Shown here: positions 11,773 to 62,019 of the stretch, piece by piece
Layout: the number at the start of each line of letters is the position of its first letter
Position numbering within the stretch: the first letter of the stretch is position 1
IMG/VR virus record: IMGVR_UViG_3300042147_000020
Span: 1 to 64,000 of that record
Direction: 5' to 3' (one strand)
DNA length: 64,000 nucleotides
The notes under the pieces: model-generated
What the model was told of the DNA's origin: nothing
Databases searched by the model: none
The model's input: the letters and a program-made list of their open reading frames with translations, nothing else
Program-made: the position numbers and the translations under genes

Positions 11773-13905
11773 TTATGCTGGAAGACTGAACTCAAATGAA
11801 TCAGTCTGACCAGTACCACTTTTGATACCTGCAAAGTAGAACATGCGAGTACCAAGGATACCAGAACCACCGAAGCCACGTGCTGCACCAGCGTTAGCCG
11901 CCAGAGCTTGCCATGTGTTCGAGAATGGATCGTAAACGTTCGACCCACTATACGGAGCACCGCCGTTAACCGACCCCCACAAGGAGATCACACGACCTTT
12001 GAAGGAGTGGAACGTTCGACGACACCCGTAAGCAGCAGGCATGTTAGCCTTCTCAGTCATTACGCCTGTCACAGTATCGTAGCAGAACGTTTTGTTGATG
12101 TAGACGCTGTTGTTACGACCACCGATCAGATAGATCTTAGTGCCAATAGCGGCGACGCCCAGATCGAGTCGAGGAGTTTGTCCAGTGATAGTCAACTCAG
12201 TCCAAGTGTTGTTGAGAGTATCGTATTTGTACTGGTTAAACTTAGTCGGTACTTCAGGAGAAACAGTACTGCTGGTCATCCCACCGAACATGTAGATGTT
12301 CGTACCCACTACACAACCGTCACCGAAGGTCATCGGTCCAGGGAGCGCTGCTTTAGTAGACCACGTACCTAGAGTAAAGTCGTAACACTCGACCAAGGTA
12401 GTAGCCGCACCGCCGTTAGCGGTTAGGCCGCCGCAGACGTACAACTTACTTCCCACTACGGCTGAAGTGTGTCCAGCTCGAGCAGTAGGTAAGGCAGGCA
12501 GATCGACCCACGCAGTACCGTCGAAGCGACGGAACCAAGCTTGTGGTGTACCACTGAAACCACCAATCCAGTACAACTTCCCATCGTAACTAACGACGTC
12601 GTGGTGGAAGCTATATCCAGGTGACGCTGTGGACTTCCAAGTCATCCCGGAGAAGTTGAACAACTCTTCCAGCACTGGCCGCCACCCGTAAGCTACGTTT
12701 GGCGTATCGTTAGGTTCATACCAGACACCAGCGAACCCAGGGTAACCGCGTAGGAGAGTACCTCCCTGCGTACTACCTTCCTTACAGATGATCATCTCAC
12801 CGGACGAGATACCGCCAAGCCAACCCATGTCAGCAGGAGTGTTATACGCCCACGCAGCGCCAGCGCCGGTGTAAGCATTAGTTACCCTCATGAAGTAGTT
12901 GTTGTACTCACCACCAGGCGAATTGGTTGGATCGTTTCCATCACCACCCGTCATCACCCGCACACGGTACGTCAGGCCACCAATTACAACAGTCTTGGTA
13001 CCCATGATCATACCCAAAGCGTTAAGCTGAGCCCATGACAAAGTCATGCGGATGATCTTCTTCGGCATGTAGAAAGTACTACCGTTGTCAACGAACTTCA
13101 ACCACGGAGTAGTGTCGTTAACCAGAGTACCATCAGTCAAACCAACTGCCGCCGCCAAGGCAGAACCGGTAATGAAGTTAGCAGCAAGTATTTCGCCAAT
13201 GAATGGAATTGGTGGCATGGTGGATTTCTTAACCAGCACTGGACGCCATCCGTACCAATTTTGGGGTGTATCGGGGGAGATGTACCAAATACCTTTAACC
13301 TGTGCTGCGGTTTCCTGTCCACCAGAGTCACTTCCTCGAGTGAAGTGACCGAAGGCAGCACCGTCAGAACAAATAGTCCCCACACCTAGTTCAGCCGAAC
13401 CGTCCATGGTTGCAACGCCCAACATTGGACCAGTGTAGTCGCCCCAGTGTTGGGCGTCTCCTGGGAAGGTTGCACGGTCTGTCATGGTGTAGATGTTGTA
13501 CATGTAGCGGTTCCACTCACCGCCAGCGTTAGACGGACCGGCTGACCCAGCCGGATTTATAGCTCCTGACAACAGCCGGACAACGAAGACTTCACCACCA
13601 ATAGTGACTTCTGCGCCGCCGAGCGACAGACCACGTGCATTGAGCTGTTCCCAACTTACGTTGTAGCGGATTGGCTTCTTGGCGATGTACAGTTCAAGGC
13701 CAGTGTCTTCGATGTAATGTAGCCAGCCCCCGTCTCTGTTCATTAGGGTCCCAGCAGTCAATCCTACCGCTGTGGCTAGGGAATCCCCGTAGATGAAGCT
13801 CACAGAAGAGACTACTCCTTTGAAGGGAGTCCCCGCTGGGAAAGCTAGATCGGAGTTGTCAATAGCCACCGCAACTTGAGTCTTAGACAATAGAGTCTCG
13901 ATCAC
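11773..13905 (-). CDS. Virion protein: two tandem 'WRPVL' domains plus a C-terminal Kelch beta-propeller
   Basis: Two ~200-aa repeats each ending YGWRPVL, then about six Kelch repeats (LYWIGG, LYVCGG, IYMFGG, IYLIGG ... YDxxxxxW). Confidence 0.8.
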   Translation of the reverse strand: MIETLLSKTQVAVAIDNSDLAFPAGTPFKGVVSSVSFIYGDSLATAVGLTAGTLMNRDGGWLHYIEDTGLELYIAKKPIRYNVSWEQLNARGLSLGGAEVTIGGEVFVVRLLSGAINPAGSAGPSNAGGEWNRYMYNIYTMTDRATFPGDAQHWGDYTGPMLGVATMDGSAELGVGTICSDGAAFGHFTRGSDSGGQETAAQVKGIWYISPDTPQNWYGWRPVLVKKSTMPPIPFIGEILAANFITGSALAAAVGLTDGTLVNDTTPWLKFVDNGSTFYMPKKIIRMTLSWAQLNALGMIMGTKTVVIGGLTYRVRVMTGGDGNDPTNSPGGEYNNYFMRVTNAYTGAGAAWAYNTPADMGWLGGISSGEMIICKEGSTQGGTLLRGYPGFAGVWYEPNDTPNVAYGWRPVLEELFNFSGMTWKSTASPGYSFHHDVVSYDGKLYWIGGFSGTPQAWFRRFDGTAWVDLPALPTARAGHTSAVVGSKLYVCGGLTANGGAATTLVECYDFTLGTWSTKAALPGPMTFGDGCVVGTNIYMFGGMTSSTVSPEVPTKFNQYKYDTLNNTWTELTITGQTPRLDLGVAAIGTKIYLIGGRNNSVYINKTFCYDTVTGVMTEKANMPAAYGCRRTFHSFKGRVISLWGSVNGGAPYSGSNVYDPFSNTWQALAANAGAARGFGGSGILGTRMFYFAGIKSGTGQTDSFEFSLPA

Positions 13906-13935: not shown

Positions 13936-14592
13936 TTACGGGGCTGTGAACAACGTAGCTTCGGCTGGAAGTGTCGGGAGTTCCGCTAGGGTCGTAGCAG
14001 CAGTGACGGCATCTTTGAAGTCCCAGATCTTTTGGTAGCCGACTGACACTGCGTAGAAAGCAGCATCCGTCATAGCAATCAGCTCAGCAGCCGTCAGTAT
14101 CACACAGATGTTCTCGTACACGCGGAACGAGAAATCCATCGCACCACCAGCCACCACAACTTCCTTAGCGATAATACGCAGGGAGGTCAAGTTGGAACGG
14201 TCGGCGTTACGGATCTGGACGTGGTACGTGCCCTCGTTGAAGGCGTAAGCGAAGCCGCGCTCGAATTGGGAAATCCGCAGATCTTCAGCCTCGCGCTGGA
14301 GTTCAGCTTTGCGGGTGGTCAACTGGTCGTTGAGTTCGGCTTGACTGTAAGTGCGTTCGATCCAGCTTTGGTACCACTTACCATCGAGTAATTGTGGCGG
14401 GCCCGCGACAACAACGTCATTCTCCGGGATCGGGGTGTCATAAACGGGTTGGTATCCGAGGGCGATCATTTCCTCTACCTCGGGTGTTGCTGTGAAGCTG
14501 GTAGTGGCTTTGAGTTTGTCGCGGATCTGGTCCAAAGTGATTGGATAGTTACCTGTGGCAACTTCGATGAAGCGAGTGTATAAGATTGACAT
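13936..14592 (-). CDS. Tail-fibre-assembly-like protein (DUF4376-like C-terminus)
   Basis: LGYxPV...GKWYQSW N-terminus; QIRNADRSNL...FRVYEN...KDAVTAATTLAEL C-terminus; lies in the fibre locus. Confidence 0.6.
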   Translation of the reverse strand: MSILYTRFIEVATGNYPITLDQIRDKLKATTSFTATPEVEEMIALGYQPVYDTPIPENDVVVAGPPQLLDGKWYQSWIERTYSQAELNDQLTTRKAELQREAEDLRISQFERGFAYAFNEGTYHVQIRNADRSNLTSLRIIAKEVVVAGGAMDFSFRVYENICVILTAAELIAMTDAAFYAVSVGYQKIWDFKDAVTAATTLAELPTLPAEATLFTAP

Positions 14593-14604: not shown

Positions 14605-15540
14605 TTACATTACAAGTTCGAGAACGGGACGCCAGTAAGTGTAGACCGCGTTATAGTTACCTATCACGTTAGTGGACACCTTGTCAGGGGCAGTAGTACC
14701 ATCACCGCCTCGCAGAATAATGGTACCACCAGCAGTTGTGGTCACATCTTTGGTATATACGTTCAGGTTGATACCGGCTAGAACCAGGTCGTCTAACGCA
14801 GGCACGCCAAAGTTTTGAATGCGACCTTGGAAATTCGGAGCCATGATGTAATCATACTCACCCCCAATTTGGTTTGCGGGCACAGCCGAAGCAGTCAGGG
14901 TACCTACCCGTGTCCCCGGTAAACGTACCACAAAATTGTCAGTACCTTTAGCCATGACGTAATTTTGAGGGATTGTACCGTAGGTACTTTTCGCCGCAGC
15001 ACTCCAAGTGCTGGGGTCGTCGGTTCCATAGACCAATCCCGCTTTGTACAGTTCGGCCCAAGATAGACCCGAACTATAGGCGAAACACACCCCTTGGTCT
15101 GGAACAAAGAGGATCTTACCGTTATAGACCATTTTGATCCAGCAGGTAATTCCTAGTCCAGCGGCGTTGTTGGTAATGAGCGGGTTGTTGATGTATGCAA
15201 CCAATTCACTGGAAGCGAATAGGTCCTCTGGACTCATGCGACCAAAAGTACCGCAACTCCAGTCACCACGTAGTAATTTCTGAGGCCCAGGGCCCGTGTA
15301 AGGCATGTAGGCCAAAGGCATGTTCGAAGACAACGTTTCTTCAGTACCCACTACTGCACTAACTCGGTAGTGGTAGACTTGGTTACGCACAGCGGTGGTG
15401 TCGGTGTAGGTGAAAATACCCGCAGCAACTTCCGCCAACACCGCAGGTAAAGCATCGTCGAGTATCACACTGTCGGCTCGGTAGACCCGGAACTTGTCAA
15501 CAGTGATGTTTCTGTCGATCCAGTTAAGTGTTAAAGACAT
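14605..15540 (-). CDS. Virion protein: FN3-like N-domain plus 'WRPVLEL' domain
   Basis: LxW...VYR...YTDTT...YHYRV, then TGPGPQxLLRGDWxCGxFG...YWRPVLEL. Confidence 0.8.
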   Translation of the reverse strand: MSLTLNWIDRNITVDKFRVYRADSVILDDALPAVLAEVAAGIFTYTDTTAVRNQVYHYRVSAVVGTEETLSSNMPLAYMPYTGPGPQKLLRGDWSCGTFGRMSPEDLFASSELVAYINNPLITNNAAGLGITCWIKMVYNGKILFVPDQGVCFAYSSGLSWAELYKAGLVYGTDDPSTWSAAAKSTYGTIPQNYVMAKGTDNFVVRLPGTRVGTLTASAVPANQIGGEYDYIMAPNFQGRIQNFGVPALDDLVLAGINLNVYTKDVTTTAGGTIILRGGDGTTAPDKVSTNVIGNYNAVYTYWRPVLELVM

Positions 15541-15550
15541 GGTTAGACCC

Positions 15551-16477
15551 TTATGTCAGAATAAGTTCGAGAACGGGGCGCCAGTTAGCATAACCGCTTG
15601 CATAATCTGCATCAGTGGGAACGTTGTAATCGAACCCTGTACTGTTGCTCACAGATATTGCGAGCTTACCCGAGGAAAAATGCTGGGTTGCAGAACCAAC
15701 GCCTCCTGGTGGAACCTCGTCGTTCCATTTATCTTGGGGTGATGTAGAATATAAGGTTAGTCCTTGTCGCCCCATCAAGCTCCCCCATTCGGATGCGTCT
15801 GTGGCGATAACACCTGGTGCATACACGTTGGTTGCCGCATCAGTGACCGACGGTGCCCGCACCAAAAAGTTATACGTGGCGTAAGGAACGACCACTTTTT
15901 GGTTAGTCAAAGTGATACCAGCAATGGTTGTTAGTACGAAGGGGGCTGAACCAGTGTCGTCCGTTCCGTATATTAATCCATTGTTATAAATGTCCCTCCA
16001 GCGGCAGGTCCCTGCGGCAAACACATTGTTAGGAATAAAAAGAACCTTACCCTTACGGATAAACTTATACCACCCAGTCACGGTGCCGTCGGCTGGAGTG
16101 GAGTTTCCGAGATTTGGGTTATTAAGGAGAGCCCTTAACTGAGAGATGCTGAGGAAGTTGGCTGTGGGAACCAACCCAAAATATCCGCAGTCCCAATTTC
16201 CTCGTAAGAGCGTCTGGGGACCTGGACCTGTGTCAGGGTAATGTCCCATGATCAGTACTGGACTTAGTAGTTCCTGTCCTGCCCGGACGTGACCCACCGC
16301 GTAGTAGTACGTAGTGTTGCGTACGGCAGTTGCGTCACTGTAAGACGTGGCTGATCCAGCAGCGGTTGCCAAAGCGGCAGGAAGGTTATTTACGTCGAGT
16401 GGTGTAGTAGACCGATAGATGTTAATGCTTTCTGCGAGCGCCGCGTTAGCAGCACCCCATGTCAAGGTAACAGACAT
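15551..16477 (-). CDS. Virion protein: FN3-like N-domain plus 'WRPVLEL' domain
   Basis: Paralog of 14605-15540 (TGPGPQTLLRGNWDCGYFG...NWRPVLEL). Confidence 0.8.
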   Translation of the reverse strand: MSVTLTWGAANAALAESINIYRSTTPLDVNNLPAALATAAGSATSYSDATAVRNTTYYYAVGHVRAGQELLSPVLIMGHYPDTGPGPQTLLRGNWDCGYFGLVPTANFLSISQLRALLNNPNLGNSTPADGTVTGWYKFIRKGKVLFIPNNVFAAGTCRWRDIYNNGLIYGTDDTGSAPFVLTTIAGITLTNQKVVVPYATYNFLVRAPSVTDAATNVYAPGVIATDASEWGSLMGRQGLTLYSTSPQDKWNDEVPPGGVGSATQHFSSGKLAISVSNSTGFDYNVPTDADYASGYANWRPVLELILT

Positions 16478-16487
16478 AACTCACTCC

Positions 16488-17450
16488 TTATACCGCAGCC
16501 GGTTCGATGAGTTCCAACACGGGCCACCAGCATGAGATAGATTGGGTTATGGTGATAGCCCCGATGTTTCTTCGAGTAAGGCCGTCGCGGGTACCAGTGA
16601 CGTTAGAACCACGAACCAACGACTGGGTTGCCGCACCCGAAGTAACCTTCTCTTGTGTCAGAATACCGTACGCCATAGACGCCGCGCTATATCCCATGGT
16701 CGTCAAGGTATTGTTTGCTTGGTTAGCCATGCGTTGGACGGTAGGTACCCATACTGAGATAGGGTACATGAGATCATCGTACTCACAAGTAAAGGTTTCA
16801 ACCGGCTCTGCTACGTTACCGGTTGGTGGAAAGACGCCGTAGTCATCGTTATAACCGCGCATTAAGCGAACGCGGTAGGTATCGGCGCCAATAGTTACCT
16901 GTGCGTTCTGGTTAACGTTGGCACCGGCGTTGTACGGACCATTGTCGTTGGAGCCGAATACCAGCCCAGCGTTGTACAGTGCCGTCCAACCAACCCCGGA
17001 AACAGGTAGTTGTTCGGGCACGTAGATCACTTTGCCGTTACGAGCGAACTTGTGCCATTTGGGAGACACGTTCTGCACCGTACCTGAAAGGAAGTTCACC
17101 GCTGTACGCAGTGCGTTGATGTTAATGAAGGACGCCGATGCGATACTACCGAAGTATCCGTAGTTGTAGTCACCGGCTTTCAAGGTGTTAGGACCAGCAC
17201 CACGACGAGGAACAGTTACGATCTGATAGTTTGGTGATACCGTCCGGTCTGTCGCCGAAATGGTCTCGAATACGTAGTAGTACGTGGTACCACGCAACAC
17301 CGTGGAGTCAGTGTAAGTAGTTTCACCTGCCGTTAGAGAAACCAACAAACCAGTCAGGTTAGCTCGGTCAATTGCCGAAGTACCACGGTAGATGTTTACC
17401 GTGATGGGAGTGGCCCCATTGGGGTTTGTCCAAGTCAATTTGTTATACAT
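16488..17450 (-). CDS. Virion protein: FN3-like N-domain plus 'WWPVLEL' domain
   Basis: Paralog (GAGPNTLKAGDYNYGYFG...WHKFARNGK...WWPVLEL). Confidence 0.8.
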   Translation of the reverse strand: MYNKLTWTNPNGATPITVNIYRGTSAIDRANLTGLLVSLTAGETTYTDSTVLRGTTYYYVFETISATDRTVSPNYQIVTVPRRGAGPNTLKAGDYNYGYFGSIASASFININALRTAVNFLSGTVQNVSPKWHKFARNGKVIYVPEQLPVSGVGWTALYNAGLVFGSNDNGPYNAGANVNQNAQVTIGADTYRVRLMRGYNDDYGVFPPTGNVAEPVETFTCEYDDLMYPISVWVPTVQRMANQANNTLTTMGYSAASMAYGILTQEKVTSGAATQSLVRGSNVTGTRDGLTRRNIGAITITQSISCWWPVLELIEPAAV

Positions 17451-17459
17451 GAAAATTCC

Positions 17460-18503
17460 TTACGCGACGTTCGCGCCACTAACAGTGAAAGGGTTCAAGT
17501 CTGCTAAGCTGTACACCAAGTTAGCTGGGTCACTTGCCAATTGAGTACCGATCGCGCTAATTGTAAAAGCGTTTAAGTCAGGTGCTGCACTTGATGTGAC
17601 GTTAACTGGGTTTAGCGCGCAACCTGGGAAGGTAGCTCCAGTGACCACAGGTTGTTTGGTGGGCCACAGAGTAATCACGTTGACTGGGTTAAACAAGGCT
17701 TCGTTAAACCCAGAACCTAGTTGGGCTTGGCGTGAGTCTAGAATCGAGGGTGCTTGAAGCCCCGTCGAAGTTCCGATGACTGTGTACGGATCTAGTAGCG
17801 TTTCATCTGGGATCAATTCCAGTACTGGATACCAATTTGAGTTCGGTGAAGCCTTACTGTAACTCCATTTTGGGGTAAGACCCGTTGCATCGCCCCTAGC
17901 CCAAAATAATGCTATATTAGACGAGCTGGTCTCCTGCACCGACATGTTTAAATTGCTACCCACGTAGCTCAGTGCGTTACTAACCCATTTATCGGATGGT
18001 GTGTTAGCACCCACTAGGACTCGCCCAAACAACTGGTCGAATTCATTGTTAGCCGCTACCACCGAGGCTGGATCAGAACCCATACCAGTCGGCAACCGTG
18101 GGAGTAGATACCAGTTACGAGTGCCGTCGAATTTCTGAATAGGGTTCCACTGATCGACCCCAGCACCTACTGGGTACAACCCATTACCCTTAACGCCGTA
18201 CACTAACCCAGAGTTATATAGGTCGTTCCACACAATGGCACTGAGGGCCATTTGTCTGGAAATGTAAATCACTTTGTTATTGCGGAAGAATTTAAACCAC
18301 TGGGCCCCTGTCCAAGAGTTGAGGGTGCCCGTAGGAATATTGAACTTTAAAACCAAGTCTTTTCCGTAGAACAGTTCAGTTCCAGACACCTCTCCGAAGT
18401 AACCCAGCGTGCTGTTACCGAACTGTAAAGTTTTGGTTCCAGGGCCTGAGTTGGGGTAAAGGTTCGAACCACTTGGAGATTTACCTAACATCATTTCTAA
18501 CAT
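17460..18503 (-). CDS. Virion protein: 'WYPVLEL' domain plus C-terminal NPVNV repeats
   Basis: Start moved to MLEMML at 18503 (GGAGG RBS); SGPGTKTLQFG...GYFGEV...WYPVLEL. Confidence 0.8.
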   Translation of the reverse strand: MLEMMLGKSPSGSNLYPNSGPGTKTLQFGNSTLGYFGEVSGTELFYGKDLVLKFNIPTGTLNSWTGAQWFKFFRNNKVIYISRQMALSAIVWNDLYNSGLVYGVKGNGLYPVGAGVDQWNPIQKFDGTRNWYLLPRLPTGMGSDPASVVAANNEFDQLFGRVLVGANTPSDKWVSNALSYVGSNLNMSVQETSSSNIALFWARGDATGLTPKWSYSKASPNSNWYPVLELIPDETLLDPYTVIGTSTGLQAPSILDSRQAQLGSGFNEALFNPVNVITLWPTKQPVVTGATFPGCALNPVNVTSSAAPDLNAFTISAIGTQLASDPANLVYSLADLNPFTVSGANVA

Positions 18504-18553
18504 TTTGTCACCTCCGATGGGGGGACACGTGCTACCAAAAGATAGACTGAGAC

Positions 18554-18594
18554 ACCACCACACAAGGGGTCAGTAACTCCCCTTGTGTGGTGGT
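18554..18594. repeat. Perfect 16-bp inverted repeat (hairpin without a U-tract in the operon direction)
   Basis: ACCACCACACAAGGGG-TCAGTAACT-CCCCTTGTGTGGTGGT. Confidence 0.8.
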
Positions 18595-18600
18595 TATGCG

Positions 18601-21600
18601 TTAAACAGAAGCACCGACGGTACCAATCCACTTCGTACCATCCCACAACAAAGTGACAATGGTGGTGGAAGCACCGAGTACAGGAGCAGCACCACCGTTC
18701 CACGTGATGGTTGGCCACGTGATCGTTGCAGCACCTTGGATGACCAACACCACGGACATGGTACGAGTTGCACCCGGCACCGTACCGGCTTTGAACGAGA
18801 TGGTAGTCGCAGTGGAGTTAGCCACCGACCACACGTTACCGATGGCCAAGTCGAGGACACCAGCCGCAGCAGCGTTCATCTTCAGGTCGTAGACGTCCAA
18901 GGACACCCAAGCACCGTTCTTACGCAGGTACTGTTTACCGTCAGAGGCAGCGTCCGCGAGGGAAGCCGGAACGATCACCCACGCTGCACCTTTACGCATG
19001 TAGCCGTTGGCATCGTTCGGAGCATCTTGCAGAACAGAGACCCACGCTGCACCTTTACGACCGTAAGCCAAGGCGTCGTTAGGTGCTTCAGGGAGACCGG
19101 CAGGAACAGTAACTTCCGCCCATGCTCCATTCTTACGAGCGTATTGTTTACCGTCGTTAGGAGCTTCTGCTACTGCGAAGACCACCTCAGTCCAAGCACC
19201 GTTCTTACGAACGTATTGCTTGCCATCACTCAGAGCTTCAGCCACAGGGACTGCTACCCAAGCGCCGTTCTTCCGGGTGTAGAAACCACCATCAGACGGA
19301 GCTTCGGAGATACCAGCCGCAGGGATCACGACTTCAAGCCAAGAACCGTTCTTACGGATGTACTGCTTACCGTCGAGCGGTGCTTCGATGACAGGGATCT
19401 CGAACCAGACACCATCTTCACGACCATACAGCTTGCCGTCTTGTGGTGCTTCCAGTACGTCGACCTTAACCCACGCACCGTCTTTACGAGCGTAGTACTG
19501 ACCATCCGACAGGGCTTCCAGTACAGTGATCTCAACCCACTGATCGTATTGACGAGCGTAGACCTTACCATCGTCAGACGGACTGTAGACGTTACCACCA
19601 CCCATGTAACCGAGTGACACCCACAGAACGTCCGTAGACTTTCTGAAGTACTGCATGGTACCGGTGTTCAGGTAGTAGTCGGCACGACGACCGTCCAGTG
19701 GACCCGGATCACGACCCAGGGAAATCCAAGCAGTGCCTGGTTCACCTTTGTCGCCAGTGAAACCGATCGGACCTTTCGGACCAACGACCGTATCACCCTT
19801 ATCACCTTTGTCGCCCTTAGGACCTTGGATAGACCCCAAGTCATCATAGGCTGCACCAGTCCAACCCCAGAAGTTCAGCCCGATCATGTAACCCTGACCG
19901 AGAGTACCAGTACCCGGCAGGTCAGCAGTGCTAGCGAGTTTCCCGAGGATTGTGATACCCGGACCCATTGGACCGTCTTCACCTTGTGGTCCTACGATGT
20001 TGCCGAGGAATACCCAAGCGGTACCATCGTAGGAGTAAACGTCGCCATCACCGACGATGTAGCCGTCGCCTTGAACCATTCCAGTAACGGCGTTCAGAGC
20101 AGCGAGATCGACGAGGTTACCCTTCGGTTTGAAGTTGTTACCTTGATCACCTTTAGGACCTTCCGGACCAATCAAGCGAGCCAAGAAGTCGTTGATGCTG
20201 GTGATAGACGGATCGACGATCTGTGCCATCTCCAGAGCAGACTTACCAGTAGGACCAGTCAGGTCGCCGAGGTTAATCCAACCTGCACCGTTGTACACCC
20301 ATAAGTGACCAGTGACCATGTAGGTCCAGCCGATCTGCGGGTCAGCAACACCGTTGAGTAGGGACGGGTTAGACAGGATGCCTTTAGCGACCATGGAGTT
20401 ACCAGTGTCACCTTTGTCGCCTTTCACCCCGTCTTCACCTTGAGGACCTTGAATGACACCGAGGTCAAGCCACTCGTCACCATCCCAACCCCAGAAGTGA
20501 CCTTGGATCAGGTAGCCATCACCCAACTCACCCGTAGCAGGCAAACCGGCAGTGGTATCGAACTTACCTTTCAGTGTCAGACCGGCACCGAGGTCGCCCT
20601 TATCACCTTTGTCACCTTTGATGCTGTCACCTTGGTCGCCCTTAGGGCCAACGTAAGTACCACAGTCAACCCACGCACCACTGATGGTGACGTAGAGGTT
20701 CTGACCAGCGATCCAAGCAGCGAAAGCAGGAGCAACGGTAGGGTCTGGCAAGTTCTCGAAGGCGGCTACTTTACCAGCGATAACCAAGTTCTGACCCGGA
20801 TCACCTTTAGGACCGGTAACCGAATCACCTTTGTCCCCTTTAGGACCGGCCACAGCAATCAACCAATCTTCGACTGTCCCGGTGTAACCCGCTTCTACAG
20901 CCAGTGCGTAGTTCGACTTACCTTTGATACTCTCCAGCCATTCAGCCAGAGTACCCACATAGCCGTCTTCTTCAACGGCCAGTTGGTAAGCAGAGAGACC
21001 TTGAACAACACCGAGGTCTTCCCATTCAGTACCCGACCACACCCACAAGTGACCTTGGATGTAGTAACCGTCACCACCGGCGTTACCGGAAGGAGGGAGG
21101 TCGCCCGGATCTTCAAACTTACCCAACACCGAGATGGCGTTGGCAGGATCGCCTTTAACACCTTGAGGACCGATGTCGCCCTCGTCACCCTTAGGACCAA
21201 CCAAGCTTTCCAAGTACTGGAGCAACGTACCACTGAAACCGGTAGAGATCGCCAGTTCGTAGTTGTTCTTACCCACCAAGGAAGCCAACCATTGGGCTTC
21301 AGTGCCACTATAACCACGGGAAGCAGCCAGCTCGTAAGCCGACTTACCAGTAGGGCCGACTTGACCAACCTTGGCCCAGCCCACTGTATCCCAAACATAC
21401 ATGGACTCGTCGATGATCCAAGAGTCGCCGGAGACGTTATCCCCGTTAGGCAACTCGGAGATGTCTGACAGAGAACCCATGATCCGTAGACCGATACCAT
21501 CATGACCTTTGAGGGACTCGATCCACTCCTCGAACGTACCTGGGAACCCGCCTTCGATTACCGCAACGTCATACGCTGAGTAACCCTGAATACCGCGGAC

Positions 21601-21864
21601 CACACCAACGTTACGCCATTCGCCTTCTACCAACGTGTGGAGATCGTAGCCGATGATCCAAGAATCACCAGGCTGAGAGTCACCCACGTTCGGAAGGTTG
21701 ACCACGTCCGCCAAGGTACCCAAGATGCGAATCGAGTCGCCGTCTCTGCCCGCAGAGACGATCTCTGACAATGGGGCTTTCTTGCTGAACCCATTTTGAA
21801 CTACTTCGATTAACTCAGCGCCCGTGATGGGGCCCGCTGGGTCCATTTCTGAGATTTTACCCAT
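18601..21864 (-). CDS. Collagen-like fibre protein with ten tandem foldon-like repeats
   Basis: Gly-X-Y blocks (GPKGDKGD), SAYELA...WLxSLxG repeats, LPxxGxxGDxYxI...VWxGxxW repeats, and EAPxDGKQYxRKNGAW x10. Confidence 0.9.
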   Translation of the reverse strand: MGKISEMDPAGPITGAELIEVVQNGFSKKAPLSEIVSAGRDGDSIRILGTLADVVNLPNVGDSQPGDSWIIGYDLHTLVEGEWRNVGVVRGIQGYSAYDVAVIEGGFPGTFEEWIESLKGHDGIGLRIMGSLSDISELPNGDNVSGDSWIIDESMYVWDTVGWAKVGQVGPTGKSAYELAASRGYSGTEAQWLASLVGKNNYELAISTGFSGTLLQYLESLVGPKGDEGDIGPQGVKGDPANAISVLGKFEDPGDLPPSGNAGGDGYYIQGHLWVWSGTEWEDLGVVQGLSAYQLAVEEDGYVGTLAEWLESIKGKSNYALAVEAGYTGTVEDWLIAVAGPKGDKGDSVTGPKGDPGQNLVIAGKVAAFENLPDPTVAPAFAAWIAGQNLYVTISGAWVDCGTYVGPKGDQGDSIKGDKGDKGDLGAGLTLKGKFDTTAGLPATGELGDGYLIQGHFWGWDGDEWLDLGVIQGPQGEDGVKGDKGDTGNSMVAKGILSNPSLLNGVADPQIGWTYMVTGHLWVYNGAGWINLGDLTGPTGKSALEMAQIVDPSITSINDFLARLIGPEGPKGDQGNNFKPKGNLVDLAALNAVTGMVQGDGYIVGDGDVYSYDGTAWVFLGNIVGPQGEDGPMGPGITILGKLASTADLPGTGTLGQGYMIGLNFWGWTGAAYDDLGSIQGPKGDKGDKGDTVVGPKGPIGFTGDKGEPGTAWISLGRDPGPLDGRRADYYLNTGTMQYFRKSTDVLWVSLGYMGGGNVYSPSDDGKVYARQYDQWVEITVLEALSDGQYYARKDGAWVKVDVLEAPQDGKLYGREDGVWFEIPVIEAPLDGKQYIRKNGSWLEVVIPAAGISEAPSDGGFYTRKNGAWVAVPVAEALSDGKQYVRKNGAWTEVVFAVAEAPNDGKQYARKNGAWAEVTVPAGLPEAPNDALAYGRKGAAWVSVLQDAPNDANGYMRKGAAWVIVPASLADAASDGKQYLRKNGAWVSLDVYDLKMNAAAAGVLDLAIGNVWSVANSTATTISFKAGTVPGATRTMSVVLVIQGAATITWPTITWNGGAAPVLGASTTIVTLLWDGTKWIGTVGASV

Positions 21865-21898: not shown

Positions 21899-22450
21899 TT
21901 AAGCTGCGTCCTCAAGACGAATGGTACCGTCTTCCTGCAACCTCACACTACCGTCTTCTTCCAGACGCGCATTACCTTCGACTGGACTAACAAGAGTAAT
22001 CGGTAAAGAACCAGTATAAAGCAACGAGCTAGCTTTAGCTCTTAGCTGAATTGTTACTTCATTAGTACCCGGTGCCGGTGTCGGTAATTCGGTGACAGTA
22101 AACTCAACGTCACTTGCCACCAACTGTAATTGTTGAACCACATAGCTCAACGTTAGGGCCAAATCAGCCGCTGGAGGACAGGAGAACCCTGAACCCAGTA
22201 CGAGGAGTGCGTCGCGGTGATAGTGGACTTCTACTGACCCGGTGAGTACCTGACCGGCCTTGGCAGTTATGACAACTTTCGTGTTATACCACGCGTCAGT
22301 TGGTGAATCCCACGCGACTGGCGCCGAGTGAGTTACCTGAGAAGCTAGGAGGGGTTTATTTGGACTGGTTCCATTGATGGCCGCGAAAAAGTTCTCTTCG
22401 GCGGTTTTCACCGGATCAATCTGTAATCGGTTAGTCACTACGCCTGACAT
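21899..22450 (-). CDS. Virion structural protein (paralog family, 1 of 5)
   Basis: NTKVxIT...GSVEVHYHR...AKASSLLYTG; C-terminal RLxEDG repeats. Confidence 0.7.
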   Translation of the reverse strand: MSGVVTNRLQIDPVKTAEENFFAAINGTSPNKPLLASQVTHSAPVAWDSPTDAWYNTKVVITAKAGQVLTGSVEVHYHRDALLVLGSGFSCPPAADLALTLSYVVQQLQLVASDVEFTVTELPTPAPGTNEVTIQLRAKASSLLYTGSLPITLVSPVEGNARLEEDGSVRLQEDGTIRLEDAA

Positions 22451-22514
22451 GATAATCATCCTCTAGATAGAGCACGGTCTCTGGATTAACGACCCGCTAT
22501 TAATAGACACTCGA

Positions 22515-22560: not shown

Positions 22561-23142
22561 TTAAGCTTCTGGATCGAAGCCGTCGAGGTCAGTAACCGGG
22601 GTAGCGATAGCCAAGCTCAGCGGTACGATAGTCAGGCCGACGAGTTCTGGGTTTACGATGATCTGACTGAGCTGAACCGAACTAGGTTCGATTATTAAAG
22701 TCAGACTACCCCGATACGCCAAAGAGCCAACAGAAGCTTTCAGCTCTACCACGTCGGCATCGACAAAATCGGTGGGGAGTGCTGTGGTTAGATCAATGTC
22801 CGTCAGCTCCAAAGCTGATCTGTAGTAGGCATTAAATCCGTCCAACAGGGTGGCGTGGGTAGGGGGAACTTCAACCACGATTCCTTGTGGGTCAGCCAGA
22901 GTTTCGAACTCCGCCAAATCAATCCGATCGTACGCGAGTTCTACTTCACCTACGAGACGACGGTTAGGTTTGGGTGTGATGATGATTTTGGTATTGGCAG
23001 GGTTTTCTGCCCCAGGTTGTTGTTCTGGTGTGAGGACTGACGGCGCGCTAAATTGGACGTCGTCAAGCGTCAAGTCCAACGAGTCTGTCTCGTTGATCAG
23101 AGCCAGGAGCTGCTCTGCGGATGTCATTCCAATGTGATACAT
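22561..23142 (-). CDS. Virion structural protein (paralog 2 of 5)
   Basis: LLALINE...NTKIIIT...YDR...SLAYRG; ends ATPVTDLDGFDPEA. Confidence 0.75.
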   Translation of the reverse strand: MYHIGMTSAEQLLALINETDSLDLTLDDVQFSAPSVLTPEQQPGAENPANTKIIITPKPNRRLVGEVELAYDRIDLAEFETLADPQGIVVEVPPTHATLLDGFNAYYRSALELTDIDLTTALPTDFVDADVVELKASVGSLAYRGSLTLIIEPSSVQLSQIIVNPELVGLTIVPLSLAIATPVTDLDGFDPEA

Positions 23143-43728: not shown

Positions 43729-45423
43729 GTGACAGAGCAGAATTACAGCGAAGAAGACATTGTTGGCGTTGAGTGCAAACATGCGGTCTATTGCGTCCCT
43801 CGTGACCGTGATGACCGGGACGATGCCATCTTCGTTAAAGAGGTTGTACACCTCAAAGACGGGCGTCAAATCCCTCGCACCAAACTCGAGGAAAACTACA
43901 AGCGTACGTTTTATCTAGAGCGTAACCAGAACTATCAGGAGAAGAAGACTCAGCAGAAGCTCAGTCGTTTGCAACAGTTCTCCTGTACCCAACGTAACCT
44001 GATGCCTTCTATTGGTCGGGCTCTGGGTCGTGGGAAGCTCAACGGCGGTTTGCGGACGGTGGCTCGTAACCCCTATCTGTACGGTGCGGACATCACCACC
44101 CCAACGTTGCTCAAACAAGACTATCGTGAAAAGTTCCCCAACGGTATCAGTCCTAACAAGGTAGCGGTGTTCGACATCGAGACTGACGTTGTGAACGGTA
44201 CAGGTGACTTGCCGATCTGTATGTCCTTGACGTTTAAGGATCGGGTGTTCCTCGCTGCTACTAAAGAGTGGGTCGGTTCCAATCCACGTTACGTCGAAGA
44301 AGTTCAAGCGGCGGCCAAGAAGTACATTGGCGATCATATCGAAGCCCGTAACATCACGATCGAGATCCAAGTCTGTGAAACGGCTGGTCAGATGATCGTT
44401 GAGACCTTCAAGCGTGCTCACCTGTGGATGCCTGACTTCGTTACCATCTGGAACATCGACTTCGATATTCCAAAGTGCTTGAAGGTCTTGGAGCGTGAAG
44501 GTATTGATCCGGCTCAGGTGTTCTCTGATCCGTCGGTTCCTGAGAAGTACAAGTTCTTCAAGTACAAGCAAGGTTCGGCAACCAAGACCACAGCCACTGG
44601 TCGTATCGACTCGATTCACCCGGCTGAGCGTTGGCACACTGCGGAATGTCCTGCGAGCTTCTTCCTGATCGACTCCATGTGCGTCTACAAGCGCATTCGG
44701 ATGGCGAAACAGAACGAGTCCTCGTACAGCCTTGATGCGGTCATGAAGAAGAACCTGAAGTCCCTAGGGAAGCTCAAGTTCGCTGAGGCAGACGCTTACA
44801 CCGGTTTGCAATGGCACATCTTCATGCAGGAGAACTTCAAGATCGAGTATTCGGTCTACTGTATCTTCGACTGTATCGGTGTTGAGTTGCTGGACGAGAA
44901 GATCAAAGACTTGCAGTTGGTTATTACCACGCAGTCCAAAGCTTCTGAGTACACCATCTACAACTCCCAACCACGCCGTCTGGTAGACGACTACTATTTC
45001 TTCTGTCGTGATCGTGGCTTCATTGTAGCGTCTTGCTCGGATGAGATGGTTCATGAGTTGGACCAGTACGTTACGGACATGAAGGGCTGGATCGTTACCC
45101 TACCGTCTCACCAGTGTGTGGATAATGGGTTGGACATTATTGAAGAGATGCCTAACGTCAGGACGTACATTCGTTCTCACGTAGCCGACTTGGACATTGT
45201 GTCGACGTATCCAAACGTACAGGTGATCCTGAACATCTCGCGTGAGACCACTCGGCGCGAGCTGTACAAGATTGCGGGTTGCCCTGAGCGTATTCAGCGG
45301 ATGGCCGGTATCAACATGACTGGTGGCCACGTGAACGCTGTGGAAATCGTCTGTGCTGTGATGAAGGCTCCTAACTTCGATACGTTGTTGGAAGACTTCA
45401 TGGAAGAGCAAAAAGCGGCATAA
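43729..45423 (+). CDS. Split family-B DNA polymerase subunit (exonuclease plus motif A; phiKZ gp82-like)
   Basis: ExoI FDIETD, ExoII WNIDFDIP, YSLD, ExoIII YCIFD, PolB motif A DLDIVSTYP; motifs B and C absent. Confidence 0.85.
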   Translation: MTEQNYSEEDIVGVECKHAVYCVPRDRDDRDDAIFVKEVVHLKDGRQIPRTKLEENYKRTFYLERNQNYQEKKTQQKLSRLQQFSCTQRNLMPSIGRALGRGKLNGGLRTVARNPYLYGADITTPTLLKQDYREKFPNGISPNKVAVFDIETDVVNGTGDLPICMSLTFKDRVFLAATKEWVGSNPRYVEEVQAAAKKYIGDHIEARNITIEIQVCETAGQMIVETFKRAHLWMPDFVTIWNIDFDIPKCLKVLEREGIDPAQVFSDPSVPEKYKFFKYKQGSATKTTATGRIDSIHPAERWHTAECPASFFLIDSMCVYKRIRMAKQNESSYSLDAVMKKNLKSLGKLKFAEADAYTGLQWHIFMQENFKIEYSVYCIFDCIGVELLDEKIKDLQLVITTQSKASEYTIYNSQPRRLVDDYYFFCRDRGFIVASCSDEMVHELDQYVTDMKGWIVTLPSHQCVDNGLDIIEEMPNVRTYIRSHVADLDIVSTYPNVQVILNISRETTRRELYKIAGCPERIQRMAGINMTGGHVNAVEIVCAVMKAPNFDTLLEDFMEEQKAA

Positions 45424-60447: not shown

Positions 60448-62019
60448 TTAGATTACATAATCAGTTGTCAGGTACTTGTGACCTACGACCCTACCTGCAA
60501 AGTTCTCGACCTTGCGTTCGTGATACTCGATATGCTTGTCGATGTCGATACACACGAAGTAGTAGAAGGTTGGCTTAGCATCAGGCCAAATCTTAATGAT
60601 CGTATCACGTAGACGACCCATCGCTTGCAAGTTACCTTGTTTGGAACCCAAGGCATCTGTCATCAACACGTGGAGCAACTTAGGAATGTCCTGAGCTGTC
60701 CCGAGGGATTTCAGTGTTGACACGATGAGATCAGCTTCGAGCATTTCGTCGAAGTCGTCTTCTGCCGTATACCGCATCACAGTGATGTCACTGTTCCGTG
60801 GTTTCAGGTAGTTCGTGACAATGGTACACATCTCAACCGTAGCACAATAGATCAACAGCTTCTGGTCATCCACGCGTATCTTGCGAAAGTTGTGGGTTAC
60901 AAAATCGGAGATCATCTCAAGGTAAGCCTTGAGGCACTGCTTGTTCTTCATCAACGATTGCTCGAAGATGACATGACTATACGACTTACGCGCCTTGTTC
61001 ATCCACTTAAGGACGTTCTGGTGACGCAAGCGGTACTGCAACGCTTCTACTGCGGTAAAGATCACACGCTCGCCGTTGTCAATCCGTTCGTCTCTCGGGA
61101 ACATGATTGCTGTACGGTTAATCAAGAACTCGTCATCGCCTTCCAATGTACCGGAGAGTGAGATGGTCTTGTGTACGTGTGAGTACAAGTCTTGTCGATA
61201 GTTGAGATGGATGTCTTGGTGGACTTCGTCAATCAACCGAATCCCAATTCCACACGTTTGGTAGAAGTTGGGAGGAGTGCAACCGTACCCGAGTTCCAAC
61301 AAGCCGTCTTTAAACTTCTCGTAGTCTTTCAGGTAGTTGAAGTACGTCATGTTCGAACAGATGATGATCTTGGCAGTCAGTTCACCCGCAAGGGCTAGCT
61401 GTGTCACGAGGGCCAGTTGTGCTGACCCCCGAACAACCATGATGTCACCCTTCTTGCACTTGAACGCTGCCTCAATGTCGCCAATCCATTTTTCAATGTA
61501 CATGGCCTTGATGCAGATGAAGACCCGACGCTTAAGCGCTGCTATACCACTCAGTGCCATGAACGTCTTACCGCGACCGGGGTCAACGGTGAGGATCTTC
61601 GTCTTACCCGGAGCAATCAGGTAAGCGATCTTTTCAACTTGGTCATCTCGCGGTGTTCGCTTGTCGATTACCTCGAACTCAACTTCAACTCCGAGGTTGT
61701 CAGGCAAGTACTCGAACACGATGGCGCTCTCATGAACGCCCCACATCTTTAAACACCGAAGCAACGCGTCCATTTCATTCCGATGGAAGTGAAAGTCTGA
61801 ACGGTCATTCGTAACGCCCACAAAGACCCGCAGCATGGCTTTTCTGAAACGACCATCAGGTCCCTTCTCGAACCCGTACTGAGCCAGTGACTTACAGAAG
61901 TCAAGCAACGCAGCTTTAACCCGAGGGGTGAACTGCGTTGCCCTTACGTGGTGACTGGCTACTCTAAGAGTCAGCTCTGGTGCTCTAGCGGTAGGTGACG
62001 GCTGGACTACACTAGACAC
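60448..62019 (-). CDS. SF2 DExH helicase (UvsW-like; phiKZ gp75-like)
   Basis: PGRGKT, IDEVH, SLSGT, QAMGRLR; GTG start with AGGAGG RBS. Confidence 0.9.
   Translation of the reverse strand: MSSVVQPSPTARAPELTLRVASHHVRATQFTPRVKAALLDFCKSLAQYGFEKGPDGRFRKAMLRVFVGVTNDRSDFHFHRNEMDALLRCLKMWGVHESAIVFEYLPDNLGVEVEFEVIDKRTPRDDQVEKIAYLIAPGKTKILTVDPGRGKTFMALSGIAALKRRVFICIKAMYIEKWIGDIEAAFKCKKGDIMVVRGSAQLALVTQLALAGELTAKIIICSNMTYFNYLKDYEKFKDGLLELGYGCTPPNFYQTCGIGIRLIDEVHQDIHLNYRQDLYSHVHKTISLSGTLEGDDEFLINRTAIMFPRDERIDNGERVIFTAVEALQYRLRHQNVLKWMNKARKSYSHVIFEQSLMKNKQCLKAYLEMISDFVTHNFRKIRVDDQKLLIYCATVEMCTIVTNYLKPRNSDITVMRYTAEDDFDEMLEADLIVSTLKSLGTAQDIPKLLHVLMTDALGSKQGNLQAMGRLRDTIIKIWPDAKPTFYYFVCIDIDKHIEYHERKVENFAGRVVGHKYLTTDYVI

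Follow-up and report, generated by a model that had tools for sequence, protein, structure and literature searches.

Among phage fibre proteins, what would ten successive copies of a motif resembling the foldon of T4 fibritin do? The T4 foldon is known as a single C-terminal trimerisation nucleus, and structural vaccinology uses it as its standard trimerisation tag. We addressed this question in a window of 64,000 nucleotides (positions 1 to 64,000 of IMG/VR record IMGVR_UViG_3300042147_000020), in which an earlier note had described ten tandem foldon-like repeats forming a shaft in a collagen fibre. The analysis favours, with somewhat better than even confidence, a reading in which the array forms a trimeric rod of stacked units, adjustable in length, that also serves as a registration clamp upstream of a beta-sandwich knob.

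The repeats lie in one minus-strand gene (Table 1). The profile of phrog_3904, "tail fiber protein", matched the minus-strand protein with an E-value of 2.8e-216 (722 bits). The source virus record comprises 238,799 bp and codes for internal head proteins as well as a phage RNA polymerase beta, and the genes flanking the fibre gene belong to families labelled virion structural proteins. The fibre locus was syntenic with a sister contig, with PhiEaH1, and with a gene of Pseudomonas phage Noxifer that is annotated as "putative tail fiber protein" and adjoins a putative tail sheath gene. By homology, the product is probably a tail fibre from a jumbo phage of the phiKZ-like group; the word "tail" is likewise an annotation by homology alone and denotes a putative location. 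A Megablast search of the gene against phages returned zero matches, and its kin were detectable at the protein level only.

Table 1. Features of the fibre locus; nucleotide positions are those of the window and residues are those of the fibre protein.
Feature	Position	Strand	Residues	Basis
Fibre gene, including stop codon	18601..21864	minus	1087 aa	ORF call and homology
Mosaic shaft, N-terminal three quarters	19591..21864	minus	1-758	
Shaft, beta-rich modules of ~46 aa, first four of eight			45-91, 125-169, 244-289, 360-406	
Shaft, beta-rich modules of ~46 aa, last four of eight			428-473, 495-537, 581-625, 636-681	
Array of ten foldon-like units	18895 to about 19590-19596	minus	759-990	sequence and profiles
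Unit 1	19525-19590	minus	motif starts at 761	
Unit 2	19459-19524	minus	motif starts at 783	
Unit 3	19393-19458	minus	motif starts at 805	
Unit 4	19327-19392	minus	motif starts at 827	
Unit 5	19246-19311	minus	motif starts at 854	
Unit 6	19180-19245	minus	motif starts at 876	
Unit 7	19108-19173	minus	motif starts at 900	
Unit 8	19030-19095	minus	motif starts at 926	
Unit 9	18967-19032	minus	motif starts at 947	
Unit 10	18895-18960	minus	motif starts at 971	
C-terminal knob, small beta-sandwich of 92 aa	18604..18879	minus	996-1087	AF2 model

All ten repeat peptides quoted in the earlier note were found, in the same order, in this single ORF. Linkers of 0-5 aa join the units, and the unit-to-unit spacing is 22, 22, 22, 27, 22, 24, 26, 21, and 24 aa. 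In the consensus, a short extended segment (V-x-E/D-A-P-x-D-G) precedes a beta-hairpin (x-Y-x-R-K-N/D-G-A-W-V-x-V). Residues D9, Y13, R15, and W20 are kept in all ten units, A6 and an acidic residue (E/D) at position 5 in nine each, G10 in eight, and P7 in six. Each unit matches T4 foldon residues 3-24 at 6-12 of 22 positions; foldon residues 1-2 and 24-27 are missing from every unit, and the foldon residue L22 is replaced, mostly by E, S, or K. The mean identity among units is 57% for nucleotides (maximum, 70%) and 48% for amino acids, and Tandem Repeats Finder picked up just a single pair of 66-base copies. Judged by their DNA, the repeats are old, and recent DNA amplification was dropped as an explanation because the identity of the unit DNA does not exceed 70%.

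To establish whether the repeats are related to the T4 foldon, profile searches were conducted in both directions. The Pfam profile PF07921 (Fibritin_C) matched the whole protein with an E-value of 9.9e-24 and 83.8 bits (gathering score, 21), and the match was limited to profile positions 70-91 of 93, which are the foldon part. When the units were scored singly, seven of the ten matched the same positions with 13-20 bits, all under the cut-off, and units 1, 8, and 9 gave no match to this profile. Conversely, a 22-position profile built from the ten units retrieved the T4 foldon 1rfo (27 aa) with an E-value of 1.8e-7 (33.9 bits), aligning unit positions 3-21 with 1rfo residues 3-21; thus 19 of 22 positions were covered, the extended segment included. 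Against the PDB, the unit profile matched 565 distinct sequences at E <= 0.01, and the best 60 of these 565 were nearly all engineered fusions. Among 1,149 distinct units collected from 248 proteins, the acidic residue at position 5 was present in 99%, R15 in 98%, Y13 in 98%, and W20 in 100%, figures that carry some circularity, as a profile had been used to select the units. Positions 5 and 15 were near-invariant over 1,096 units, leaving no variation for covariation. The foldon-like identity proposed for the repeats was thus borne out by the profile searches in both directions, the retained key residues, and the predicted hairpins described below.

The 344-aa plus-strand ORF that overlaps the array (18583..19617) raises the alternative that the repeats are an artefact, whether a repeat that arose by chance, a misassigned frame, or tandem repetition in non-coding DNA. 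However, the Pfam and PHROG matches (E-values of 1e-23 and 1e-216) fall on the minus-strand frame, and the identity values of 48% for protein and 57% for DNA indicate units that were kept as protein while their DNA diverged. Moreover, full-length homologues were present in 193 phage records, and 1,758 clusters of a representative library of 1.84 billion proteins matched at E <= 0.001. This reading is already refuted and retains practically no probability; the plus-strand ORF is a shadow of the repeats.

We then examined the predicted structure of the array. The AF2 monomer model of aa 755-1087, which was based on a 5-row alignment, had a pLDDT of 41.5, and was read for secondary structure only, contained ten hairpins at the foldon hairpin positions. 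In the AF2 model of aa 968-1087 (pLDDT, 92.6), 20-22 residues of the last unit superposed on the T4 foldon structures 1aa0, 1avy, 1nay, and 1rfo, with deviations of 0.7-1.3 A and 41-50% identity. The ESMFold2 homotrimer of aa 755-1087 had an ipSAE of 0.79 (0.81, 0.79, and 0.73 in the individual runs), whereas the best control had 0.00. Among the calibration proteins, 21 of the 30 whose solved structure is a pair of one chain attained the ipSAE mark, as against 0 of the 23 whose solved structure is a single chain; this calibration used two copies, and the tool remarks that the counts hold only roughly for three. The partner pLDDT was at least 64, and the runs agreed in at least 29% of contacts. 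Confident inter-chain contacts recurred in all ten units at the same positions (3, 5, 6, 9-18, 20, 21, and 23), and positions 7 and 19 lay outside them. The prediction thus points to a homotrimer with chain contacts in every unit, although the predictor may owe this score to the numerous foldon trimers already solved. The result takes the form of contacts. The proposal that the foldon has become a stacked shaft unit C-terminal to the collagen segments accordingly stood in part: the array lies downstream of the last GXY run and trimer contacts are predicted in each unit, but propeller-like stacking was not seen in the contact-only model.

The earlier note put the ten units forward as a natural library of foldon variants. 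Because the units are without the first two and the last three or four residues of the foldon, their trimerisation may be cooperative rather than autonomous, and they would make up such a library only putatively. The packing between layers would also have to differ from that in T4, since the terminal residues are absent and L22 is mostly replaced as described above.

The array is not the C-terminus of the protein, because a conserved 92-aa knob comes after it. The knob was modelled with AF2 within aa 968-1087 at the pLDDT given above, from an alignment built without rows from GenBank loci, and the lowest-error contacts of the predicted trimer fall in it. Its best solved match was the capsid spike gp52 of Pa223 (Foldseek E-value, 6e-4; VIA Z, 8.6); the VIA match spans gp52 residues 143-294, and its Z is near the background quoted for the tool. 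Pa223 gp52 consists of a triple beta-helix followed by a knob that its authors call a canonical TNF fold (bioRxiv 10.1101/2025.06.11.659172). Also among the best solved matches was the tailspike Solidus gp83, in its C-terminal domain (Z, 7.3), and the BFVD matches were tail fibres of phages 4MG, Rebecca, Psa21, GAP31, and PhiPA3.

This knob match bears on a second alternative, in which the units share only a local hairpin with the foldon and the trimer is a continuous triple beta-helix or beta-spiral. Phage fibre shafts commonly consist of short repeats that form such helices or spirals. Furthermore, a triple beta-helix precedes the knob in gp52, the closest solved match, and part of that helix is included in the VIA match; the predicted trimer is known from contacts alone, and the units do not keep L22 or the terminal residues of the foldon. 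By contrast, the two-way profile match takes in both the hairpin and the extended segment over 19 of 22 positions, the single-unit model superposes on the foldon at about 1 A, and linkers that range over 0-5 aa with a spacing that varies over 21-27 aa do not resemble a helix of strict periodicity. The units also keep the pair formed by the acidic residue at position 5 and Arg-15, which in the T4 foldon is intermolecular (PDB 2kbl, E5R monomer). On balance, we consider a continuous helix or spiral unlikely.

Upstream of the array, an internal jackhmmer search delineated the eight beta-rich modules of the shaft, with E-values of 1e-14 to 1e-24. The shaft also holds helix-like "SAYxLA..G..GT..WL.SL.G" motifs. 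A census of GXY runs of at least three triplets identified 12 runs of 3-6 triplets each, which account for 147 of 1087 aa (13.5%), and the last run (aa 695-712) is N-terminal of the foldon-like array. The Pfam Collagen profile (PF01391) scored 15.6 bits against the protein, below its 27.2-bit cut-off. With so small a GXY share, a longest run of six triplets, and a subthreshold Pfam score, the description as a collagen fibre was not upheld; the protein is a mosaic fibre with collagen-like segments.

We compared the fibre with known foldon-bearing proteins. It shares with T4 fibritin (gp wac; 1rfo/1aa0) a motif of 19-22 residues, comprising the E-A-P-x-D-G segment and the Y-x-R-K-D/N-G-x-W-V hairpin, and in both cases the motif sits in a trimeric fibre, the trimer being predicted here. 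However, in T4 fibritin a single foldon caps the C-terminal end of a segmented coiled coil, whereas the present fibre has ten that are internal and followed by a knob. The fibre protein is not a fibritin, since only ~22 profile positions match, its body belongs to phrog_3904 and is composed of beta-rich modules and GXY runs, and it ends in the 92-aa knob; a segmented coiled-coil body with a terminal foldon was not found in it. An orthologue of fibritin was dropped because of the same tail-fibre family membership. An intramolecular chaperone was also dropped, as domain searches revealed no Peptidase_S74 domain in the fibre protein.

Natural duplication of the foldon within one protein is nevertheless shared with JS98-type fibritins. 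JS98 fibritin has two foldon motifs with a coiled-coil spacer between them and folds via these motifs alone (PMC3797505), and Escherichia phage EcS1 (P0049, "fibritin neck whisker" in NCBI) carries six foldon-like units within aa 434-603 of 607. These two proteins are neck whiskers with a coiled-coil body and a terminal last unit, and their units are spaced by 27-38 aa or more; in contrast, the present fibre belongs to a tail-fibre family and has ten closely packed units with a knob at the end. The unit profile also matched gp54 of Pseudomonas phage JBD30 (8rk3_a, residues 123-142; E-value, 1.8e-6), the only natural non-T4 solved chain among the matches listed. This trimeric receptor-binding protein has an internal foldon-like hairpin ("knee") with a distal domain after it (PMC11445458); JBD30 is a siphophage, and by profile its protein has a single unit, with an N-terminal DUF2793 and a different distal domain. 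The engineered (GlyProPro)10-foldon (PDB 1nay, "GPP-Foldon") has the same order, collagen-like and then foldon, and the double-foldon spike constructs 8wro and 8wtj, with two tandem foldons, were the top PDB matches of the array; these three are artificial constructs in which glycine-rich linkers join one or two T4 foldons. Among the PDB profile matches, no solved natural tandem foldon array was found. In the full-text literature (subscription journals lay outside the coverage), a search for tandem or repeated foldon-like arrays in phage fibres yielded only the JS98 two-foldon fibritins and engineered uses.

Related fibres were found among the tail fibres of jumbo and rV5-like phages, namely, Noxifer gp138, FLC1-1B gp156, and those of PhiEaH1, Psa21, UPEC06, and CR3/CR9. 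They have the same cassette of units and then a knob (~97-127 aa), a shaft rich in short GXY runs, and 31-45% identity to the fibre over the matched part; none has been described structurally. The number of units is seven in FLC1-1B, four in Noxifer, three in UPEC06, two in PhiEaH1, and one in Psa21. More widely, runs of 2-13 units occurred in hundreds of phage protein clusters, cultured phages included, and many phage fibres ended in the conserved knob, which there came immediately behind 1-13 units of the foldon-like type. This distribution, together with the published duplication in JS98 (PMC3797505), shows that such an array is not peculiar to one phage, and the comparison of repeat number across relatives suggested in the earlier note gave tandem counts of 1-13 before a knob of the same type, which spans ~97-100 aa.

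The sister phage has 13 units, and its array is 81% identical and differs by three separate whole-unit indels. Collinearity between the two phages holds for units 1-6, the final unit, and the knob, and the distal units 7-9 are the part that has been reshuffled. The knobs are 95.7% identical, and their codons differ synonymously in 31 cases and non-synonymously in 4. These differences bear on a third alternative, according to which the array is mainly an avidity binding surface for a repetitive host surface polymer and its foldon likeness is only a scaffold. Consistent with such a surface, positions 8, 11, 12, 14, and 19 vary among units around a fixed core, it is the distal units that are reshuffled, and the knob, usually the variable receptor-binding tip, is here the most conserved part. 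However, domain searches of the fibre protein gave no match to a lectin or carbohydrate-binding family, and the conserved residues belong to the foldon core and not to a pocket. The cassette also precedes varied distal domains (Peptidase_S74, F5/8 type C, and Collar), as a structural connector would. A role mainly in binding therefore appears quite improbable.

Returning to the favoured reading of a trimeric rod and clamp, we infer its foldon geometry in layers, its part in folding, and the location on the tail. Each unit is the counterpart of residues 3-23 in the T4 foldon, which has 27 residues, and three copies of the unit would pack round a three-fold axis as in T4, with Trp, Tyr, and Ala/Pro pointing inward and the pair of acid-5 and Arg-15 linking chains. 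Successive layers would stack via the short linkers to give a rod of beads that connects the mosaic shaft with the knob. Such a rod might serve as a spacer, the length of which is altered in whole units, and, with the knob, as successive clamps for trimerisation and registration on the C-terminal side. The clamps would set the three chains in register, and the short collagen-like and beta modules upstream would then fold from that side, as the engineered (GPP)10-foldon does. Alternatively, the knob alone could act as the folding nucleus, and the array would then be a mere spacer.

A stronger proposal is that this "foldon rod" represents an undescribed class of shaft, in which each ~22-residue layer is an autonomous trimerisation domain and the number of units sets the length; we put this forward tentatively, as its chances appear to be less than even. 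If it is true, the collected units would provide over a thousand natural foldon variants as alternative or orthogonal tags. Stacking as autonomous layers would amount to a novel kind of modular motif for the shafts of trimeric fibres, its length evolving in steps of whole units, and would account for register in mosaic fibres with very short collagen-like runs. The cassette of foldon-like units and knob is itself widespread and unannotated, and recognising it would allow the tail fibres of jumbo and rV5-like phages to be annotated better.

All ten peptide strings quoted in the earlier note were found in one minus-strand open reading frame, the fibre gene. The units follow one another at a spacing of 21-27 aa, with linkers of 0-5 aa. 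Several independent tests revealed that the repeats are foldon-like, as had been claimed. The fibritin C-terminal profile (Pfam PF07921, Fibritin_C) matched the whole protein with an E-value of 9.9e-24 and 83.8 bits against a cut-off of 21, and the match was limited to profile positions 70-91 of 93, which correspond to the foldon part. When the units were scored singly against this profile, seven of the ten matched the same positions with 13-20 bits, each below the cut-off, and units 1, 8, and 9 yielded no match. In the reverse search, the profile built from the ten units (A4) retrieved the 27-residue T4 foldon 1rfo with an E-value of 1.8e-7, positions 3-21 aligning on 3-21. The explanation that the array is an artefact is extremely improbable.

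Coordinates of the fibre gene, its parts, and other features of the window
Feature	Position	Strand	Remarks
Protein of 710 aa with a C-terminal Kelch beta-propeller	11773-13905	minus	Kelch_1, E 3e-24
DUF4376 protein of 218 aa, adjoining the Kelch protein	13936-14592	minus	E 7e-10
Four tandem paralogous genes directly downstream of the fibre gene	14605-18563	minus	308-367 aa; phrog_1062 / phrog_3589, 'virion structural protein'
Fibre gene	18601..21864	minus	ORF, 1087 aa
Ten foldon-like units	18895-19596	minus	motif starts at aa 761, 783, 805, 827, 854, 876, 900, 926, 947, 971
Candidate degenerate unit	19612-19695	minus	aa 724-751
Eight beta-rich modules of ~46 aa	19603-21864	minus	aa 45-681; internal search, E 1e-14 to 1e-24
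Two DUF7941 paralogues just upstream of the fibre gene	21899-22459, 22561-23142	minus	E 3.5e-12, 6.6e-27
DNA polymerase (phrog_3011)	43729-45423	plus	phiKZ-like jumbo phage marker
Helicase	60448-62019	minus	phiKZ-like jumbo phage marker
RNA polymerase beta-subunit piece (phrog_3015)	62041-63984	minus	phiKZ-like jumbo phage marker

In every unit, 6-12 of the 22 residues match those at positions 3-24 of the T4 foldon. D9, Y13, R15, and W20 (T4 numbering) are invariant across the ten units, and A6 and E/D5 are each present in nine; the foldon's first two and last three or four residues are missing from the units, and L22 is mostly replaced by E, S, or K. In T4, E5 and R15 of the foldon form an intermolecular salt bridge, and the E5R substitution reportedly produces a monomer (PDB 2kbl). 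The pair was near-invariant over 1,096 units, a set picked by profile, and this is weakly consistent with a conserved trimer contact.

Identity between units averaged 48% for amino acids and 57% for DNA (maximum 70%), and Tandem Repeats Finder detected a single pair of copies in the array DNA. Judged by sequence, the units were copied long ago. A stretch lying just upstream of unit 1, DGRRADYYLNTGTMQYFRKSTDVLWVSL (aa 724-751), displays a foldon-like order of Y, R, K, and W with a longer turn and may be a degenerate eleventh unit; it was absent from the repeat-profile matches at a domain E-value of 0.01. The related protein P0004 has additional clear units at this place.

The label 'collagen fibre' in the earlier note proved too strong. 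The protein has 12 GXY runs of three or more triplets, which cover 147 aa (13.5%), the longest comprising six triplets. The Pfam Collagen profile scored 15.6 bits, below its cut-off of 27.2. The placement of the array C-terminal to collagen-like segments was borne out, the last GXY run (aa 695-712) preceding the array. The N-terminal two thirds of the protein is a mosaic, in which short GXY runs and helix-like 'SAYxLA..G..GT..WL.SL.G' motifs lie interspersed between beta-rich modules (consensus LG.l....LP..G..GDgy.I.g.lW.W.g..W.dlG.iqG). The module end (W.G.eW.dLG) looks like the foldon hairpin turn, and the repeat profile yielded no match to the module ends.

The AF2 monomer of aa 755-1087 was of low confidence (pLDDT 41.5), as would be expected of an obligate trimer and an alignment of five sequences, and its secondary structure comprised ten beta-hairpins exactly on the foldon hairpin positions. 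A second AF2 model, spanning the last unit and the domain C-terminal to it (aa 968-1087) and drawing on 26 aligned sequences, was confident, with a pLDDT of 92.6. In this model, the last unit superposed on 20-22 residues of solved T4 foldons (1aa0, 1avy, 1nay, 1rfo, and others) with deviations of 0.7-1.3 A and a sequence identity of 41-50%; the Foldseek probability was 0.75-0.92, and the E-values were not significant because the stretch is very short. The ESMFold2 homotrimer of aa 755-1087 gave a median ipSAE of 0.79 (runs 0.81, 0.79, and 0.73) against 0.00 for the best of three controls, a pass that possibly reflects memory of solved foldon trimers. The ipSAE mark was reached by 21 of 30 proteins solved as one-chain pairs and by none of 23 solved as single chains, counts that are only roughly valid for three copies. 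Partner pLDDT was at least 64 and between-run contact agreement at least 29%. Every one of the ten units had confident inter-chain contacts in the same register, at foldon positions 3, 5, 6, 9-18, 20, 21, and 23; positions 7 and 19 lay outside these recurring contacts. The prediction was given as contacts; the layered, propeller-like geometry of the units is inferred.

We compared the fibre gene with that of a sister phage (a 238,014-bp JGI contig, L007:6001-9465). Amino acid identity was 79% in the N-terminal part (aa 1-740; 211 synonymous and 156 non-synonymous codon differences), 81% in the array (aa 759-995; 56 and 44), and 95.7% in the C-terminal knob (aa 996-1087; 31 and 4). The two phages are collinear over units 1-6 and at the last unit; the three units by which they differ trace to three distinct indels of one whole unit each, located in the distal half of the array. 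Discrete stacked modules account for these indels and the variable linkers better than does a helix of strict periodicity. We consider it most likely, with fair confidence, that the ten units form a stack of trimeric, foldon-like layers. Such layers would form a rod of adjustable length, and the units together with the knob would provide the mosaic shaft with successive registration clamps on its C-terminal side. Another continuous fibre fold, having only the hairpin motif in common with the foldon, is unlikely, and it is improbable that the array serves mainly for binding through variable surface positions.

The foldon motif is already known, as are its duplicates in fibritins and an internal example in a single solved receptor-binding protein. 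JS98-type fibritins carry two foldon motifs (PMC3797505). A protein of Escherichia phage EcS1 that NCBI names fibritin neck whisker (P0049) carries six C-terminal foldon-like units (aa 434-603 of 607) at a spacing of 27-38 aa, the last one stopping 4 residues before the end, so multi-foldon fibritins exceed the published two-motif type. The trimeric receptor-binding protein JBD30 gp54 has one internal foldon-like hairpin in its 'knee' and was the only natural non-T4 solved chain among the PDB matches listed for the repeat profile; the only chains with two matched stretches among them were two engineered spike constructs. The engineered (GPP)10-foldon (PDB 1nay) has the same order of parts as the window fibre. 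The searched literature contained no description of a long tandem foldon array as a shaft, and the PDB matches listed for the repeat profile included no solved example of such an array.

Sequence searches showed the cassette to be widespread among phages. It was found by tblastn in 193 phage records, including Pseudomonas, Ralstonia, Erwinia, and Burkholderia jumbo phages and enterobacterial rV5-like phages, in which the relatives bear the annotation tail fibre or 'collagen triple helix repeat-containing protein'. An exhaustive search of 1.84 billion cluster representatives with the array returned 1,758 clusters with E <= 0.001, of which 453 reached <= 1e-10 and 34 reached <= 1e-30. Repeat number, counted with the profile of the ten repeats, varies among related phages from 1 to 15: 15 units in P0006, 13 in the sister phage fibre (P0002) and in P0004, 11 in P0003, 10 in the window protein, 7 in FLC1-1B, 4 in Noxifer, 3 in UPEC06, 2 in PhiEaH1, and 1 in Psa21. 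Tandem runs of at least five units occurred in 53 of 243 collected proteins and runs of at least ten in 7. The window array lies towards the long extreme of a common theme, and a claim of its uniqueness is overstated, tandem runs being plainly present in many deposited phage genomes. The interpretation in the earlier note is supported in part: the foldon-like units placed after the last GXY run stand, the collagen fibre does not, and the natural library of ten foldon variants is a putative one. The motif also lies upstream of many other distal domains, among them Peptidase_S74, F5/8 type C, Collar, and Phage-tail_3.

The 92-aa knob after the array recurs as a conserved terminal domain in many fibres, immediately behind foldon-like units, and the lowest-error contacts of the predicted trimer lie in it. 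It is the best-conserved fibre part between the sister phages, opposite to the usual variable fibre tips. Among solved structures, its best matches are without exception domains of phage fibres or spikes: the Pa223 capsid spike gp52 (Foldseek E 6e-4, VIA Z 8.6), the C-terminus of tailspike Solidus gp83 (Z 7.3), a Klebsiella phage KP1 baseplate protein, and CBA120 TSP4. The authors of the Pa223 structure termed its C-terminal knob a canonical TNF fold (bioRxiv 10.1101/2025.06.11.659172); at Z 8.6, the likeness of the modelled knob is suggestive only.

The minus-strand fibre protein matched the tail-fibre family phrog_3904 (E 2.8e-216); a plus-strand open reading frame overlapping the gene (18583..19617) was rejected as a shadow of the repeats. 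The source record comprises 238,799 bp at an estimated completeness of 86%, the window being its first 64 kb. It encodes the beta subunit of a multisubunit phage RNA polymerase, as well as a DNA polymerase and internal head proteins, which marks the virus as a phiKZ-like jumbo phage. The window, Pseudomonas phage Noxifer, and Erwinia phage PhiEaH1 share the order of small DUF7941 virion proteins, fibre, and a row of ~300-aa paralogous virion proteins. The row of four recurs in PhiEaH1, in Noxifer (as genes 133-136), and on the sister contig, which has three DUF7941 paralogues against two in the window. The Kelch protein and its DUF4376 neighbour may be a second receptor-binding protein with its assembly factor. 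For the paralogue at 17460-18563, the called GTG start possibly lies too far upstream.
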